In this document: piece by piece, positions 11,264 through 55,025 of the stretch | Layout: every line of letters starts with the position of its first letter | Numbering within the stretch: the stretch's first letter is position 1 | Source: Amoeboaphelidium protococcarum X5 | Taxonomy: Eukaryota > Fungi > Aphelidiomycota | Assembly (NCBI GenBank): GCA_023515725.1 | Contig: JALDTO010000158.1 | Location: forward strand, 372,001 to 436,000 | DNA length: 64,000 nucleotides | Direction: 5' to 3' | Translations under genes and position numbers: made by a program | The notes under the pieces: model-generated | Seen by the model: the letters and a program-made list of their open reading frames with translations, nothing else | What the model was told of the DNA's origin: nothing | Database searches by the model: none

Positions 11264-11535
11264 TTCGATTAAAATAGACTATGGTGTTAAATTTAAGCGG
11301 CGCGATAATGAAAAGAAGTGATACTTGTCATAACGGTTGAATTGTGACACAATCTTTATGCACGTGATTCATCATTGAAGTTTTAACAATGTACAGTACA
11401 AGCACGCTAGAACTTTAGTCCACTAGAACAGCAATATGCGCTATCATGCATAACAAATTTTATTCGGCGGCTTAAAAAAGGTATCTATTGAGACAGTATA
11501 GTAGCTCCTATAGATAAAATAGATGCAGCAAAAAT

Positions 11536-11608
11536 AGGCGTTACTCGGATTCGAACCGAGGTTAAGCGAGTTAAAGTCGCGGGTCCTAAACCACTAGACG
11601 ATAACGCA
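11536..11608 (-). tRNA. tRNA with UUA anticodon (putative tRNA-Gln decoding UAA, possibly also UAG)
   Basis: Cloverleaf TGCGTTA-TC-GTCT-AGTGGTTTA-GGAC-C-CGCGA-CT[TTA]AC-TCGCT-TAAC-CTCGG-TTCGAAT-CCGAG-TAACGCC-T, followed by a T5 Pol III terminator. The 3' CC-U73 end is as in eukaryotic tRNA-Gln. Confidence 0.9.
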
Positions 11609-11717
11609 TGATTCAGCGGAAAATCTGCAGAAACACTCAATATAATCAATAGTACTTTCAAAGTGAAAGGTCAACGTTTCATGATGGTGACATGAAATTT
11701 ATTTAAATCAATTGCAT

Positions 11718-48515: not shown

Positions 48516-48741
48516 GCGTTTTAAAGATACTATATAGATTAGTTTGATTGCCATGTGTGTTAACGCGGATGTTGCGCGCCCAATTTGATTGGGTATGATT
48601 TTATTGCAACAAAGACTAGAATTTGGTCTTTGATGATCCATACCGACAGTTTCTGGAGAGTAAGTAGGCAAAAACTTTGTCGACTTTGACAAGGCCAGTT
48701 AGTCTGCAAGAGGAACAAAATGTTATAGAAGCAAAAATACT

Positions 48742-48823
48742 TGTAATCGACGGGATTTGAACCCGCGCCCTCGAAAGGAATGCCGCCTTAAGACACCGGA
48801 TTAGACCACTTTCCTACGATTAC
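48742..48823 (-). tRNA. tRNA-Leu(AAG)
   Basis: GTAATCG/CGATTAC acceptor stem, anticodon loop TT[AAG]GC, long variable arm, TTCAAAT T-loop, A73, downstream T-run. Confidence 0.92.
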
Positions 48824-49502
48824 ATGTGAAACATAGTAAATTTTCAAAAATGCCAAATATGTAACAACCTAAATGTGAAAAATCACTGGCCATCACCTTA
48901 TAGCTTTTTATCGTTGAAGCTAAAGTGTCAAATGGATCAATATTGGCAGTCGTATCTAAAAAGCTTGTTGAAAGAACTAGACTGACACTGGCGGTTGATG
49001 CAGTCATGTTAAAATACGCGATCGAGAGAAGAAGTGTTGCCTAGAGTACATCTTGGTCTTCGAAAACTTTCGATAAACACCTCGCATCTTGTTAACTAAG
49101 AGTATTGACCCAATTCAATCATTTTATTTCATCGTAATCTTAAAGTCTCATCTGCTATGATATATTGTACATTTCTATGGCATCTAATAATTTAGCTTGC
49201 GACGCCGCTGTGAACACATTTATGGGAAAAGTTCTATTAAAATCGTGGTCTTAAAACGACTGATTTTAATATTGTATATCATTACTAATAAGTCAATCAC
49301 CAAATTGATTTACTGTAGAAGAGAGCCATCTGACAAACACAGCTACGTTAGCGAAAAACTTCACAATTCATCTACATAAATGCCGGGGTGACGCGGGATG
49401 GAAATTGGATTTCCGGCATGAAGGTGGCTGGTCTTACTGCGTCACCGAATAGGTGGCCCCTTATTTCAATTTTCTTTTGACTGATCATATTTTGCACTTA
49501 AA

Positions 49503-51772
49503 TACAACGGCAATTAAAAGATTATAAAGTATGGTAAGTAAAGCTGCAACTCTTAAATTCCTTTCGAGCAAATTACTCAGAATCTGTCTGTTGACCATCG
49601 TTAAAACTTATCAGACTATTGCGAAAATCTATGGCGCCTCATTCCTGAGGGTGGGGCTTTGCTCAAAATATACCTGTACGCTTTTTTGGAGAATCCTGAT
49701 ATCGATGCAGTTTGTCCTGACCTGTCTGTTATAACGATTAAATTCTCTTTTTGCGGAGTTTAGACTGACAAAGTTCGCAATGGAGATACTACCCCCATCA
49801 AGTCATTGGATTAGAAATGATCTACATCGTCTGGCATGGACTCAATGGAAGGAGACGCGTGATCCGGATATTCCGTTCGCCTTGATATTTGATAGATGGA
49901 ACAAGACTGTCTATACGATTGCCGAGAGTTATGTCAAGCATTGTAAAGTTTAGACTGCTGTCAATATTTAAGACCGCGTGCGTAAGTATTCCAGCGCTGC
50001 ATTGAAATAGGCTGATTCTGATAATGTCTTGAAGTCTAAGGATTTGATAGAAATTAATTTAGACTCTAAACAGAATTTCAATATGGATGCAGTTGACTTA
50101 GCGCAGTTTTTAAAGTAGGGAATAAACATTCGAGTTACGCATGAATTGGTGATAAGTTTGAATTAGATTTATCATGAAATCTACGCGTATGCTGTGTTGA
50201 TCACAAGTTAATACCTTTTTAGTGATGTAACGGATACTAATTGAAGCGAGTACTTGCGGATGATGTACTTTCTGCAGTAATACTTTCATGCTCACAATCT
50301 GCCCATGTTCAACATCTGCCCCGATATTAAGTTATCGCCATTCCATATTACTTTAAACAAGACTATAGCATCTAGAACATAATTATTTGGCGATAATGGG
50401 CAGAAAAGTGAGAATAACTTTGAAAGTAGTTTCAAGTTCTCTGCTTTGGATAAGAAGTACAAGCGGTACAAGGAATTCTACACTGATTTGTACTCTGCAT
50501 CTGTACCATTTTAGATCAAAGCTGATGATAAGACCACGAAGGCGAGCAGTTAGTCTAATCCAGAGTTGAAATCATCTTAGAAGAGCAGCTAGAAGTAATC
50601 ATCATCTCTGCAATTATCTCCTGGCATTTCAGTCACCAGTATGAATCCAGCTGACTTGGAACCAGAAGACTTTGAGACATTTTAACCATTAAGAGCTAAG
50701 CGGAAGTAAGGAGACGAAGCTTAACCTCTGGAATGGAAGAAGCCTCGAAAGTCTTTGGCGCAGAAGTATGCACAGTCATAGGATTGCCCTGATGATCCAA
50801 TAGACGACCCAGAAGAAGTCGAAGCTGGTATAGAGGAAGTTGATAGCATTATAGCAGGAGAGGAAGATCCACTAGCAGATGAGGACTTTGAGGATGCTTT
50901 GGATGAGCGTGAAGAAGAATCTGATGGCGAGGAGTATGAACTGGCACCATCAGTTGCAGGCAAGACAGACTACAGCTGGTTAAATAATCCCAAGTTCCCA
51001 CAGATTGACATTGCAGATCCGAGTAAGACGTATGTTGGAGTAGACGTCGGGGTTATTTTTTATGGCAGTGAGTAGCATTGTGAAGGCTAAGGATGGAGCT
51101 GACGCGCTGCAAGTATTGGAAGCAACGCCAAAGAATTCTATCCAAAGTGTCATGCTGAAGACATCTGACTTTAGAGCTGCAGTGAGGGATAAGTTAAGTT
51201 AGCAGGATAGACAGCTATCTGAGTATGTTTATGCTGAGCCGAGATACTGCTTCAATTCTGAGATGGCCAAGAGGAAGGCTGCGAATGCTGCTGTAGTCAC
51301 CCACTAACGTATGCCACTGTACATTAATCGCTCTGTCCAAAGAGCCAAGTATACGAGACATTTGCTAAGAAGAACATTACTCCAAGAGCGTGCAGCCAGA
51401 CTACTTGGTTTGAAGTCTTATAGTAACTCGCAGAAGGACAAGATCATTGTATTTTGGGGAACTGGAGGTATGAAAAAATTCAAGAATCGTTATCTCCCCG
51501 GCCGGAAATGCCATCCAGCTTCCAAAGAGCTGCTCCACTATGTCTAGATGATTGCAACAGTCTATGTTACCCATGAGAAGGGTACGTCTGTTCATTGTAG
51601 TAACTGCGAGTAAAGGGTTGTCCGAAGAAGGACTGCCGACCAAGATATAGTCACATGCGCACATTGTCATCTCGTCATTAACGGAGATGTGAATGCCGCA
51701 ATAAACATTCTCAAAATCGGACTTATAATGGCAATTAACAGAGGTAGATTCCCTATGTAATTTACTCTATGA
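49503..51772 (+). pseudogene. Fanzor1/TnpB-like RNA-guided RuvC endonuclease, disrupted
   Basis: RuvC-I YVGVDVG (Asp 51043-45), IIVFWGTG, shifted RuvC-II THEKGTS (Glu 51575-77), CSNC...CAHC zinc finger, RuvC-III NGDVNAAINIL (Asp 51686-88). Upstream YLRMMYFL..MFNICP..HITL and FYTDLYSAS motifs. Lesions: in-frame TGA 50242-44, extra T in the T6 run 51056-61, probably another frameshift near 49817. 5' end uncertain. Confidence 0.85.
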
Positions 51773-51788
51773 AATAGGTGATACTTAC

Positions 51789-51815
51789 TACATTCAATAC
51801 TTCAGTATTCTCTCT
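51789..51815 (+). repeat. 27-bp direct repeat, copy 1 (putative target-site duplication)
   Basis: TACATTCAATACTTCAGTATTCTCTCT, identical to 52671-52697. Confidence 0.9.
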
Positions 51816-52670
51816 ACCCACTCTCGATGCTATGAAAAATAAGGCCTCATTTATGGATCAACCATCTTATCAAGATGCAAAGACCACGAAGAATCCTTCG
51901 ACCACCTGCTACAATGCTCCCATACTAGCGATAACTGGTAAAAAATCTAGGATACTTGGACTGCGCTCTTAGGTAGCTGTTGGCACCTCTCTCTCAAATA
52001 GCAAAGTCTAAAGTCCTCCTCTCAGCCAAATGTCACCGAACTGGCAGCCGTCATCGGATTAGATCCAGAGCTGGGATTCATTTCCAACCTTCTCATTTTG
52101 ATAGTATAATGGCGCCTCTATGGACTAGACTGCCTGCTATCGGCGTTGTATGAAGAAATCTGGAAAGCTCGTTAGGCTCAAATCAAACTGCAGGATGAAT
52201 TGCTCGTATAAAACCTTAAACTCATCACTCTGACCTGCTCCTCCACCTCTATAGCTTCTCACCGAGACTCTGTCCAATAGACAAGAACAAAGTACTCCCG
52301 CAAGATCAGGCTGAAGCAAGGTACGAGCAGCAAGTCAATCACCAAGTCAACAGTAGAGATCAAACTACCACGGCACCCGACACCTGTGATCAAGATAAAC
52401 ATGAAGAAGCGTTAACTCCCTAGCAACTCAGATGAAGACTTCGTCTAAAATGGATGCTAAAAAAGAAAAGCTCCCGATAAATACCAGGCAAAATACATAC
52501 CAAACTATGAGCCGCGCCTAGTGGAAAGCCGCTCTACGGCTGCAAGCAATTGTGACGTTGCACTTGTCCGAGCTGGAATCATCTAGTCAGCTCACCGTGT
52601 AATACCGCAAGTCAGCAGGAGACACGGGATTATGGACAATGTGAGTATGAGTGTGTGCTTAAATATATTA
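51816..52670 (+). mobile_element. 5'-truncated non-LTR retrotransposon (LINE) 3' fragment
   Basis: LPTLDAMKNK, then (frameshifted) SRCKDHEESFDHLLQC...W...LYEEIWKAR, the zinc-knuckle/C-terminal pattern of LINE ORF2. Bracketed by the 27-bp direct repeats. Confidence 0.72.
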
Positions 52671-52697
52671 TACATTCAATACTTCAGTATTCTCTCT
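52671..52697 (+). repeat. 27-bp direct repeat, copy 2 (putative target-site duplication)
   Basis: Identical to 51789-51815. Confidence 0.9.
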
Positions 52698-52698
52698 C

Positions 52699-53282
52699 TT
52701 TCTCAGTCGTTTCACCCGTTAATGCAATGCTCTCGAGTAAAATGTTTCATCTGACAGATTATAGCGGTTTGTGATCACGACACGTCACACACTCTCTACT
52801 CTATCAGTATATTTCATCCAAACTTTCATGGGATTTGAGGTTCTTGAAGCCAACCGGTCAAGCAGCTTTCAGCGTCGATCAACTTCTCGTGAGTTGTTTG
52901 TACGAGTCGCTGTGACACTAACCGGCGTTAGAGAATGTTTCGTTGTATCGTGGAGCTGAAAATTTCCAGTGTCTGAGAGAAAAAATTTTAAATCCGATCA
53001 CGAACTGGTTAAAATCGTCAAAGGCACGATGCAAAGGCTCAAGTCTGACACTCCCTCACGGGTGGTAAGGACCGTTGACGTCTACTGCAACGAACTATAC
53101 GCGGCAGATCTAGGTTCAGTGATATTCATTGCTTGCTGTTCGTGCATTCTGATGAATATATTTCGTTACTCCCCGGCCTTCGGGCCAAAGGCAGCGTCCC
53201 TTTGAGCTTTAGGTGGCCACCGAAGGGTGGTAAGCTCGACGTCTTTTTACCGCGAGTGGAGCTCATGCAGTTGGGTAGATCT
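52699..53282 (+). ncRNA. Structured non-coding region 3' of Fanzor; candidate omegaRNA scaffold / element right end
   Basis: Nested helices: AGATCTA/TAGATCT (53106-12/53276-82), ATATTCAT/ATGAATAT, GGCC-TTCG-GGCC, CAAAGG/CCTTTG, GAGCTT/AAGCTC enclosing GCCACC-GAAG-GGTGGT. Upstream: TTTCTCAG/CTGAGAGA, TTTCAGC/GCTGAAA, CTAAC/GTTAG. Confidence 0.5.
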
Positions 53283-53318: not shown

Positions 53319-53399
53319 TGCGTTCTGTGAGACTCGAACTCACGCCCCCGAAGGGATTACCACCTGAAGATAACTGTATGGCCGCTAACAGAAGAACGC
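53319..53399 (-). tRNA. tRNA-Leu(CAG)
   Basis: GCGTTCT/AGAACGC acceptor stem, TTATC-TT[CAG]GT-GGTAA anticodon arm, CCC-TTCG-GGG variable arm, A73, T5 terminator. Confidence 0.88.
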
Positions 53400-54944: not shown

Positions 54945-55025
54945 GCGTTCTTCTGTTAGCGGCCATACAGTTGTCTTTAGGCGGCATTCCCTTCGGGGGC
55001 GTGAGTTCGAGTCTCACAGAACGCA
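54945..55025 (+). tRNA. tRNA-Leu(UAG)
   Basis: Same body as 53319-53399 with anticodon arm TTGTC-TT[TAG]GC-GGCAT; T5 terminator downstream. Confidence 0.88.

Follow-up and report, generated by a model that had tools for sequence, protein, structure and literature searches.

A Fanzor pseudogene and its tRNA-gene surroundings in the aphelid Amoeboaphelidium protococcarum

Within the 64,000-nucleotide stretch of DNA analysed here (the window), from the algal parasite Amoeboaphelidium protococcarum, a Fanzor pseudogene of about 746 codons runs on the + strand from an ATG at 49531 to a TGA at 51770-51772, provided that TAA and TAG are read as glutamine. A first-pass annotation had started the gene at 49503, which we correct to the ATG; the motifs it named (VGVDVG, IIVFWG, THEKGTS and NGDVNAAINIL, with the CxxC pairs) are present where it placed them. 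The features of the gene are as follows.

49531-51772, + strand: pseudogene, probably of Fanzor1 type, ~746 codons with TAA/TAG as Gln; GenBank model MIR68_004929
50482-50496, + strand: WED-strand motif TDLYS; TDG in typical Fanzor1 (PMC10711439)
50515-50970, + strand: insert of ~150 aa between WED and RuvC-I, Ser/Gln-rich, basic (KKPRKSL), then acidic; predicted disordered
51043-51045, + strand: RuvC-I Asp (VGVDVG)
51458-51460, + strand: Gly at the canonical RuvC-II position (IIVFWG)
51575-51577, + strand: alternative RuvC-II Glu (THEKGTS), six residues before the zinc finger
51596-51688, + strand: C4 zinc finger (TNB; CxxC at 51596-51607 and 51656-51667) and RuvC-III Asp 51686 (NGDVNAAINIL)

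Is the glutamine reading of TAA and TAG (together TAR) real? The genome has a tRNA with anticodon TTA (window 11535-11609), which from its sequence is likely the TAA decoder; TAR codons occur in all long host open reading frames, and the GenBank model reads Gln at these positions. TAR makes up 56% of the Gln codons of host frames and likewise 56% (24/43) of those of the gene, as against 24% (6/25) in a second Fanzor family of the same genome, family B (p=0.002). Since TAR use equals that of the host in the one and is far lower in the other, the long residence in this lineage that had been proposed is supported for the clade of the window gene, and family B appears to be a recent arrival.

Is the gene a Fanzor? 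The order of Fanzor motifs is, reportedly after Bao and Jurka, D..TS..C4..D. The same order is found here, with the RuvC-I Asp, the C4 finger and the RuvC-III Asp, the last reading NGD and not RD. Fanzors are further defined by Asp, Gly at the canonical RuvC-II position, Glu before the finger, and Asp (PMC10711439, PMC10530073). In the window gene the canonical RuvC-II Glu is replaced by the Gly at 51458 and the alternative Glu at 51575 lies 39 residues on, which confirms from sequence the rearranged active site first suggested. The DPG motif of RuvC-I reads DVG here, DPG in several members of the clade and DLG in another. The absence of any TnpB, Fanzor or RuvC match had been named as what would refute the assignment; PF07282 is found over the zinc finger, in place, at 40.8 bits (E 5e-9), above its curated cut-off. 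The acidic low-complexity stretch noted before RuvC-I is likewise present, and its occurrence throughout the clade marks it as a family trait. We conclude that the sequence confirms a Fanzor with the layout Asp, Gly, alternative Glu, C4 finger, Asp. By analogy with known systems, its product would formerly have been an RNA-guided, TAM-dependent nuclease.

The structural comparisons are consistent with this. The AlphaFold models are weak, with pLDDT 55 for the NUC lobe and 37 for the other model; full-length structural matches of the modelled NUC lobe, at that pLDDT of 55, are mostly Cas12, TnpB and GtFz1 (Z 4.6-6.4), while with these weak models no Foldseek match reached E 0.001, and the geometry of the triad stays a predicted one. 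In the ESM Atlas most neighbours, at 0.95-0.96, are PF07282 clusters from eukaryotes and giant viruses; a search of the Atlas by shape returned generic RNase H-like folds only.

Can the gene still be read? Four lesions interrupt it.

49556-49559, + strand: frameshift 1, one base fewer than in the sisters and in runs X8 and X10
49792-49796, + strand: frameshift 2, one extra base in a C run, compensating frameshift 1
50242-50244, + strand: in-frame TGA at a Trp position of the sisters, common to the distant SRR845265 allele
51056-51061, + strand: frameshift 3, one extra base in a T6 run, separating RuvC-I from RuvC-II/III

The TGA and the T6 frameshift had been recognized at first pass, but the estimate of one or two frameshifts was too low: there are three, each of a single base, and the 79 codons between the first two are read in the wrong frame. 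Alignment with the sisters reveals in addition a 9-nt in-frame deletion near 50051. The derivation of the TGA from TGG is supported by the Trp of the sisters. All three catalytic residues are retained, as claimed, but frameshift 3 leaves the first of them, the RuvC-I Asp, in a different frame from the other two. Raw reads had been proposed as a check on the T6 run and the TGA; read contigs of two isolates contain the lesions, and we reject a sequencing artefact. This copy is a pseudogene and cannot encode the protein.

When did the gene decay? Paralogs differ by dN 0.25-0.32 and by dS from 1.75 to saturation, the mark of old purifying selection. Between alleles, by contrast, one synonymous change stands against 18 that are nonsynonymous or create a stop, and the divergence between isolates is ~1%, in keeping with the recent decay that had been supposed. 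The biofilm allele SRR845265 is free of frameshifts but contains the same TGA, besides a stop of its own and a 63-codon deletion; run X8 carries other frameshifts in the gene. Because the TGA is common to the window copy and this distant allele, it is an early lesion; because an 882-nt insertion behind the gene is present in all four runs, the insertion is older than the frameshifts. The sequences thus indicate neutral decay after the insertion and the TGA, separately in each isolate.

How are its relatives distributed? The genome holds at least 36 PF07282 loci, of which ~19 belong to the clade of the window gene. Intact sisters, whose existence had been thought possible, were not found: every readable copy is broken or truncated. 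For several relic loci, and for the copy on C212 (C212:372000-377000, MIR68_008430), which alone in the clade has a C-terminal frame unbroken over 490 codons, this assessment draws on hit tables and the other strain. Nor is the family concealed from mining. NCBI nr contains the gene as the hypothetical protein MIR68_004929, and its sisters are the records MIR68_010344, MIR68_009819 and MIR68_005609; PF07282 falls on these records or on their cluster representative. What does hold is that standard-code gene calling truncates the gene in metagenomes, where the protein of a metagenomic allele ends at the first TAG. Saito 2023 (PMC10432273) mined nr with PF07282, and the rows of its table at hand list two A. 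occidentale proteins and no A. protococcarum entry; our literature search found no paper that names Fanzor together with Amoeboaphelidium. The two proteins (KAI3658238.1 and KAI3657820.1, in the part of the Saito 2023 supplement consulted) come from the same genus and have the alternative Glu before the finger, but belong to a different clade, since a clade profile built from stop-free pieces and run over 1.8 billion proteins missed them. All proteins that this profile did find are from A. protococcarum; word and HMM searches also gave A. protococcarum sequences only, and relatives in metagenome or viral contigs were not found. On this sequence evidence the clade is old, code-adapted and confined to A. 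protococcarum. The gene is therefore less surprising than first thought: a real but dead Fanzor, already in the public protein databases.

Family B presents the opposite picture. Four of its frames are open at 696 aa and 98.6-99.7% identical, and among its loci L039-L042 and L050 lie on contigs C154, C212, C13, C205 and C264. Its RuvC-I reads DVN, it has an SDG motif, and a 90-nt 3' block ending TACAGTA is followed by a variable flank. It shares with the window clade the active-site layout and the C-terminal tail, at 29% identity over 139 aa; unlike that clade it is intact, uses TAR sparingly and lies away from tRNA genes. By sequence it is the best candidate for an active aphelid Fanzor. Another PF07282 family is as code-adapted as the window clade (TAR 54-61%). 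A third Fanzor-like family (L051, L052, L054, L055) has open frames of 900-1140 aa with full TAR use, and its C-terminal half contains the alternative Glu and the finger.

The gene is followed by an insertion and then by a conserved non-coding block.

51816-52697, + strand: insertion of 882 nt, absent from the homeolog, from the 3' end of a non-LTR retrotransposon-like element
52698-53248, + strand: ~550-nt non-coding block, 80-94% conserved among clade copies; candidate omegaRNA precursor
53175-53243, + strand: terminal stem-loops, 99% of cells paired in six copies; candidate omegaRNA scaffold

The insertion is flanked by a 27-nt duplication (51789-51815 and 52671-52697) and separates the gene from its 3' block. 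We take it to encode a zinc-finger-like LINE C-terminus, on the strength of its motifs; Pfam gave no match for it. It ends in a repeat present at seven other places. This 160-nt 3' end (window 52516-52675), which may be structured, is 70-93% conserved at those loci and ends sharply.

What might the 3' block be? With the insertion removed, its identity among copies is 80-94%, against ~67-69% for their coding DNA. It ends at a T run, which is the right end of the element, with unrelated flanks beyond; a left end, a TIR, a TSD and a transposase were sought for the element and not found. The last 70 nt fold into nested stems that are preserved in six copies, among which there are wobble changes and a single double change. 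Covariation in the block does not exceed that of shuffles (169/500), its folding energy is ordinary, and Rfam contains no known RNA family that matches it. A relative of 43% identity keeps only a 30-nt motif of it. In the L060 copy the protein is 30-43% identical but the block 80-86%. The block may owe part of its conservation to 3' ends exchanged recently. A conserved, apparently structured 3' RNA region at the element boundary with a variable flank beyond, as seen here, is what is expected of a Fanzor. Since known Fz1 omegaRNAs are only 75-150 nt long (PMC11423790), against ~550 nt here, the scaffold probably lies in the terminal part. The flank that begins at 53249 would supply the guide; by the same analogy the whole would be an omegaRNA region. 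We also considered an internal variable guide at 53161-53172 and discarded it, since this stretch proves homologous from copy to copy and L036 is broken there by the insertion of a tyrosine-recombinase element.

That element, of 746 aa (L036:3-2243; C98:1431299 and 20 more), is present in at least 21 copies that are 99-100% identical, and from its motifs is presumably Crypton-like. A copy of it split the 3' block of the homeologous Fanzor, the two sides of which are now on different contigs through translocation or a mis-join.

tRNA genes lie on both sides of the element.

48741-48824, - strand: tRNA-Leu(AAG) gene, its 5' end facing the Fanzor ATG 707 nt away, a recurrent geometry in the clade
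53319-53399, - strand: tRNA-Leu(CAG) gene, 70 nt past the element's right end

Is this arrangement fortuitous? Of the ~19 clade loci, 14 lie 0.3-4.7 kb away on the 5' side of a tRNA gene, in either orientation, and these are all 14 of the tabulated loci; one homeologous pair lies on the 3' side and three loci have no settled geometry. Homeologs are not independent, and the count reduces to about eight or more independent events. Measured against a partial list of 63 tRNA genes, 7/17 clade loci are within 3 kb of one, compared with a background of 1.8%; on the same partial list the figure is 0/13 for family B, 0/21 for the Crypton-like element, 1/18 for other PF07282 loci and 1/8 for LINE-like ends. 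By Rfam, every one of the larger clade loci fetched has a tRNA next to it, and the 17 control loci (135 kb) contain none. On C57, ~1 kb separates each of two clade loci from a tRNA gene. One tRNA of the other strain has two clade copies and a Ty3 element stacked before it. Ty1, Ty3, TRE5 and Dada, which target Pol III genes, likewise occupy the 5' side of tRNA genes, Ty1 in an upstream zone of roughly 1 kb (PMC3545840); they differ in encoding their own integrase or transposase, and Dada inserts into the RNA gene. The literature searched describes no Pol III-gene-targeted element with a Fanzor, and a tRNA-upstream habit, for which it gave no report, appears to be new for Fanzors.

Alternatively, insertion was indiscriminate, and copies survived only where Ty3 insertions had opened gene-free zones upstream of tRNA genes. 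This survival bias, the chief competing reading, is possible, if doubtful. The Ty3 LTR sits 13-30 nt from tRNA genes in the same zones, the gaps are wide (0.3-4.7 kb) with a host gene inside one of them, and the clade is old. But the other PF07282 loci, which include the equally code-adapted family, and the LINE-like ends are rarely near tRNAs, and on the side that faces the element an LTR is missing both in the window and in L064. We prefer targeted integration, as the more probable reading, to survival in safe zones.

Further insertions were seen in these zones. The Ty3/Gypsy element (L067:12186-18009, L061:1758-2007) places its 300-nt LTR 13-30 nt upstream of tRNA genes, and beside the window tRNA-Leu(CAG) such an LTR is polymorphic, being present at window 53412 in runs X5 and X10. 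The same two runs contain a further insertion at 49118-49119, missing from the window, whose end resembles L044 sequence. The tRNA-Leu(CAG) gene and a tRNA-Leu(TAG) gene at 54945-55025 form an inverted pair, 92% identical, around a PSST/NDUFS7-like gene; ARAGORN calls both and the Rfam scan lacks them.

How does the window copy compare with its homeolog on C244? The flanks are 89-95% identical and the ends of the gene 93-100%, yet in between lies the following.

49813-51490, + strand: mosaic middle; identity to the homeolog 41-76% by 100-column windows

This divergence equals that between unrelated paralogs. Judged from the sequences, copies must have recombined, whether another subfamily supplied one of the middles or conversion made the ends alike. 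The mosaic would fit break-induced conversion. In one homeologous pair (L037 against L038) the orientation of the Fanzor element with respect to its flanks is reversed; apparent long terminal inverted repeats in these two loci were traced to that inversion and discarded.

The sharp mosaic, the occupation of both homeologous loci and the disparity between protein and 3' block in L060 could also be read as those of an element that was domesticated, or that is kept at fixed loci beside tRNA genes as a unit of site-specific homing, through gene conversion between divergent copies and not transposition. We regard this as unlikely, for the readable copies are all broken, the alleles are neutral, and at least eight independent loci imply past mobility.

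To which class does the gene belong? Fanzor1 proteins (SpuFz1, GtFz1, PpFz1; PMC10432273, PMC11423790) share with it a eukaryotic host, a size of ~700 aa, the alternative Glu and the C4 finger, and form multi-copy elements without a transposase of their own and with a conserved structured 3' end. The 746 codons, ~600 without the insert, compare with 600-800 aa and an expanded REC/WED half in Fanzor1. Fanzor1 has kinked REC2 helices; here helices are predicted, at low confidence, between RuvC-I and RuvC-II. Fanzor1 genes travel in eukaryotic transposons with TIR/TSD or Helitron ends; of the window element the right end is defined. The window clade differs in its TAR=Gln codons, its lack of a detected TIR, its place beside tRNA genes, the death of all readable copies and the WED motif, which at the presumed equivalent position reads TDL, or ADL/TDP, across the clade instead of TDG. 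Its 150-aa insert, predicted disordered, lies between WED and RuvC-I, whereas the FRI insert of PpFz1 is folded and inside RuvC.

A Fanzor2-derived or separate TnpB lineage would account for the missing TDG and for the best PDB sequence matches, which are TnpB-like proteins and a mimivirus Fanzor2 over the zinc finger only. Such an origin is improbable given the length, the Gly at RuvC-II and the long REC/WED half. The gene also matches the TDG-like family B from RuvC-II to the C-terminus in profile comparison (P=88%, E 3e-6), and the WED part has a weak Atlas link, a lead only, to Mucoromycota and giant-virus DUF8286 clusters (0.89). Fanzor2 of the IS607 type has ~500 aa and an IS607 serine recombinase neighbour; no TnpA was found in the window or the fetched clade loci, in agreement with the first-pass annotation, which saw no transposase nearby. 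Size, the Gly and the match to family B make Fanzor1 likely on motifs; strict membership is lowered because the WED motif is TDL and not TDG. As for the GenBank model, in which a 46-nt GT-AG intron (51023-51068) removes RuvC-I and the frameshift to leave a 473-aa nuclease-dead RNA-guided binder, it has a canonical donor and acceptor and a deposited protein model behind it but is hardly credible, since the predicted protein is without REC and part of WED, no joint occurs there in four runs (none known to be RNA), run X8 has two more frameshifts at that place, and substitutions are neutral; the intron is probably false.

We think it likely, therefore, that the locus is a decayed non-autonomous element, a Fanzor1 gene with a right-end omegaRNA region, from an old A. 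protococcarum clade on the 5' sides of tRNA genes. How might it have worked? To go by characterised Fanzors, the active protein would have bound RNA from the 3' end of the element together with ~15 nt of flank. Empty sites adjacent to a TAM would have been cut by a single RuvC site (Asp51043, Glu51575 and Asp51686), and repair from the occupied copy would have restored or spread the element. Integration targeted to tRNA 5' sides by a transposase acting in trans would be the simplest reading. Inactivation would have come early, with the retroelement insertion between gene and RNA block and with the TGA, and the neutral decay of each isolate would have followed. A bolder proposal, which we offer tentatively, is of a Fanzor1 family targeted upstream of Pol III genes, with an omegaRNA precursor of up to 550 nt, a clade-specific basic/acidic insert that might tether the protein or its element to tRNA-gene chromatin, and gene middles exchanged by nuclease-induced conversion.

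The role of Fanzors in eukaryotes is still extrapolated from bacteria. As a source of editing enzymes the window locus is poor and the intact family B copies are better; what is novel in the clade is its tRNA-upstream distribution, its long 3' block and its mosaic structure. TAR use serves as a clock of residence. The genome pairs a dead, old, tRNA-anchored clade with a young intact family, in a species of which several strains have been sequenced, and so lends itself to tests of restorative homing, from mosaic alleles and empty sites, and of whether a Fanzor element targets safe harbours.
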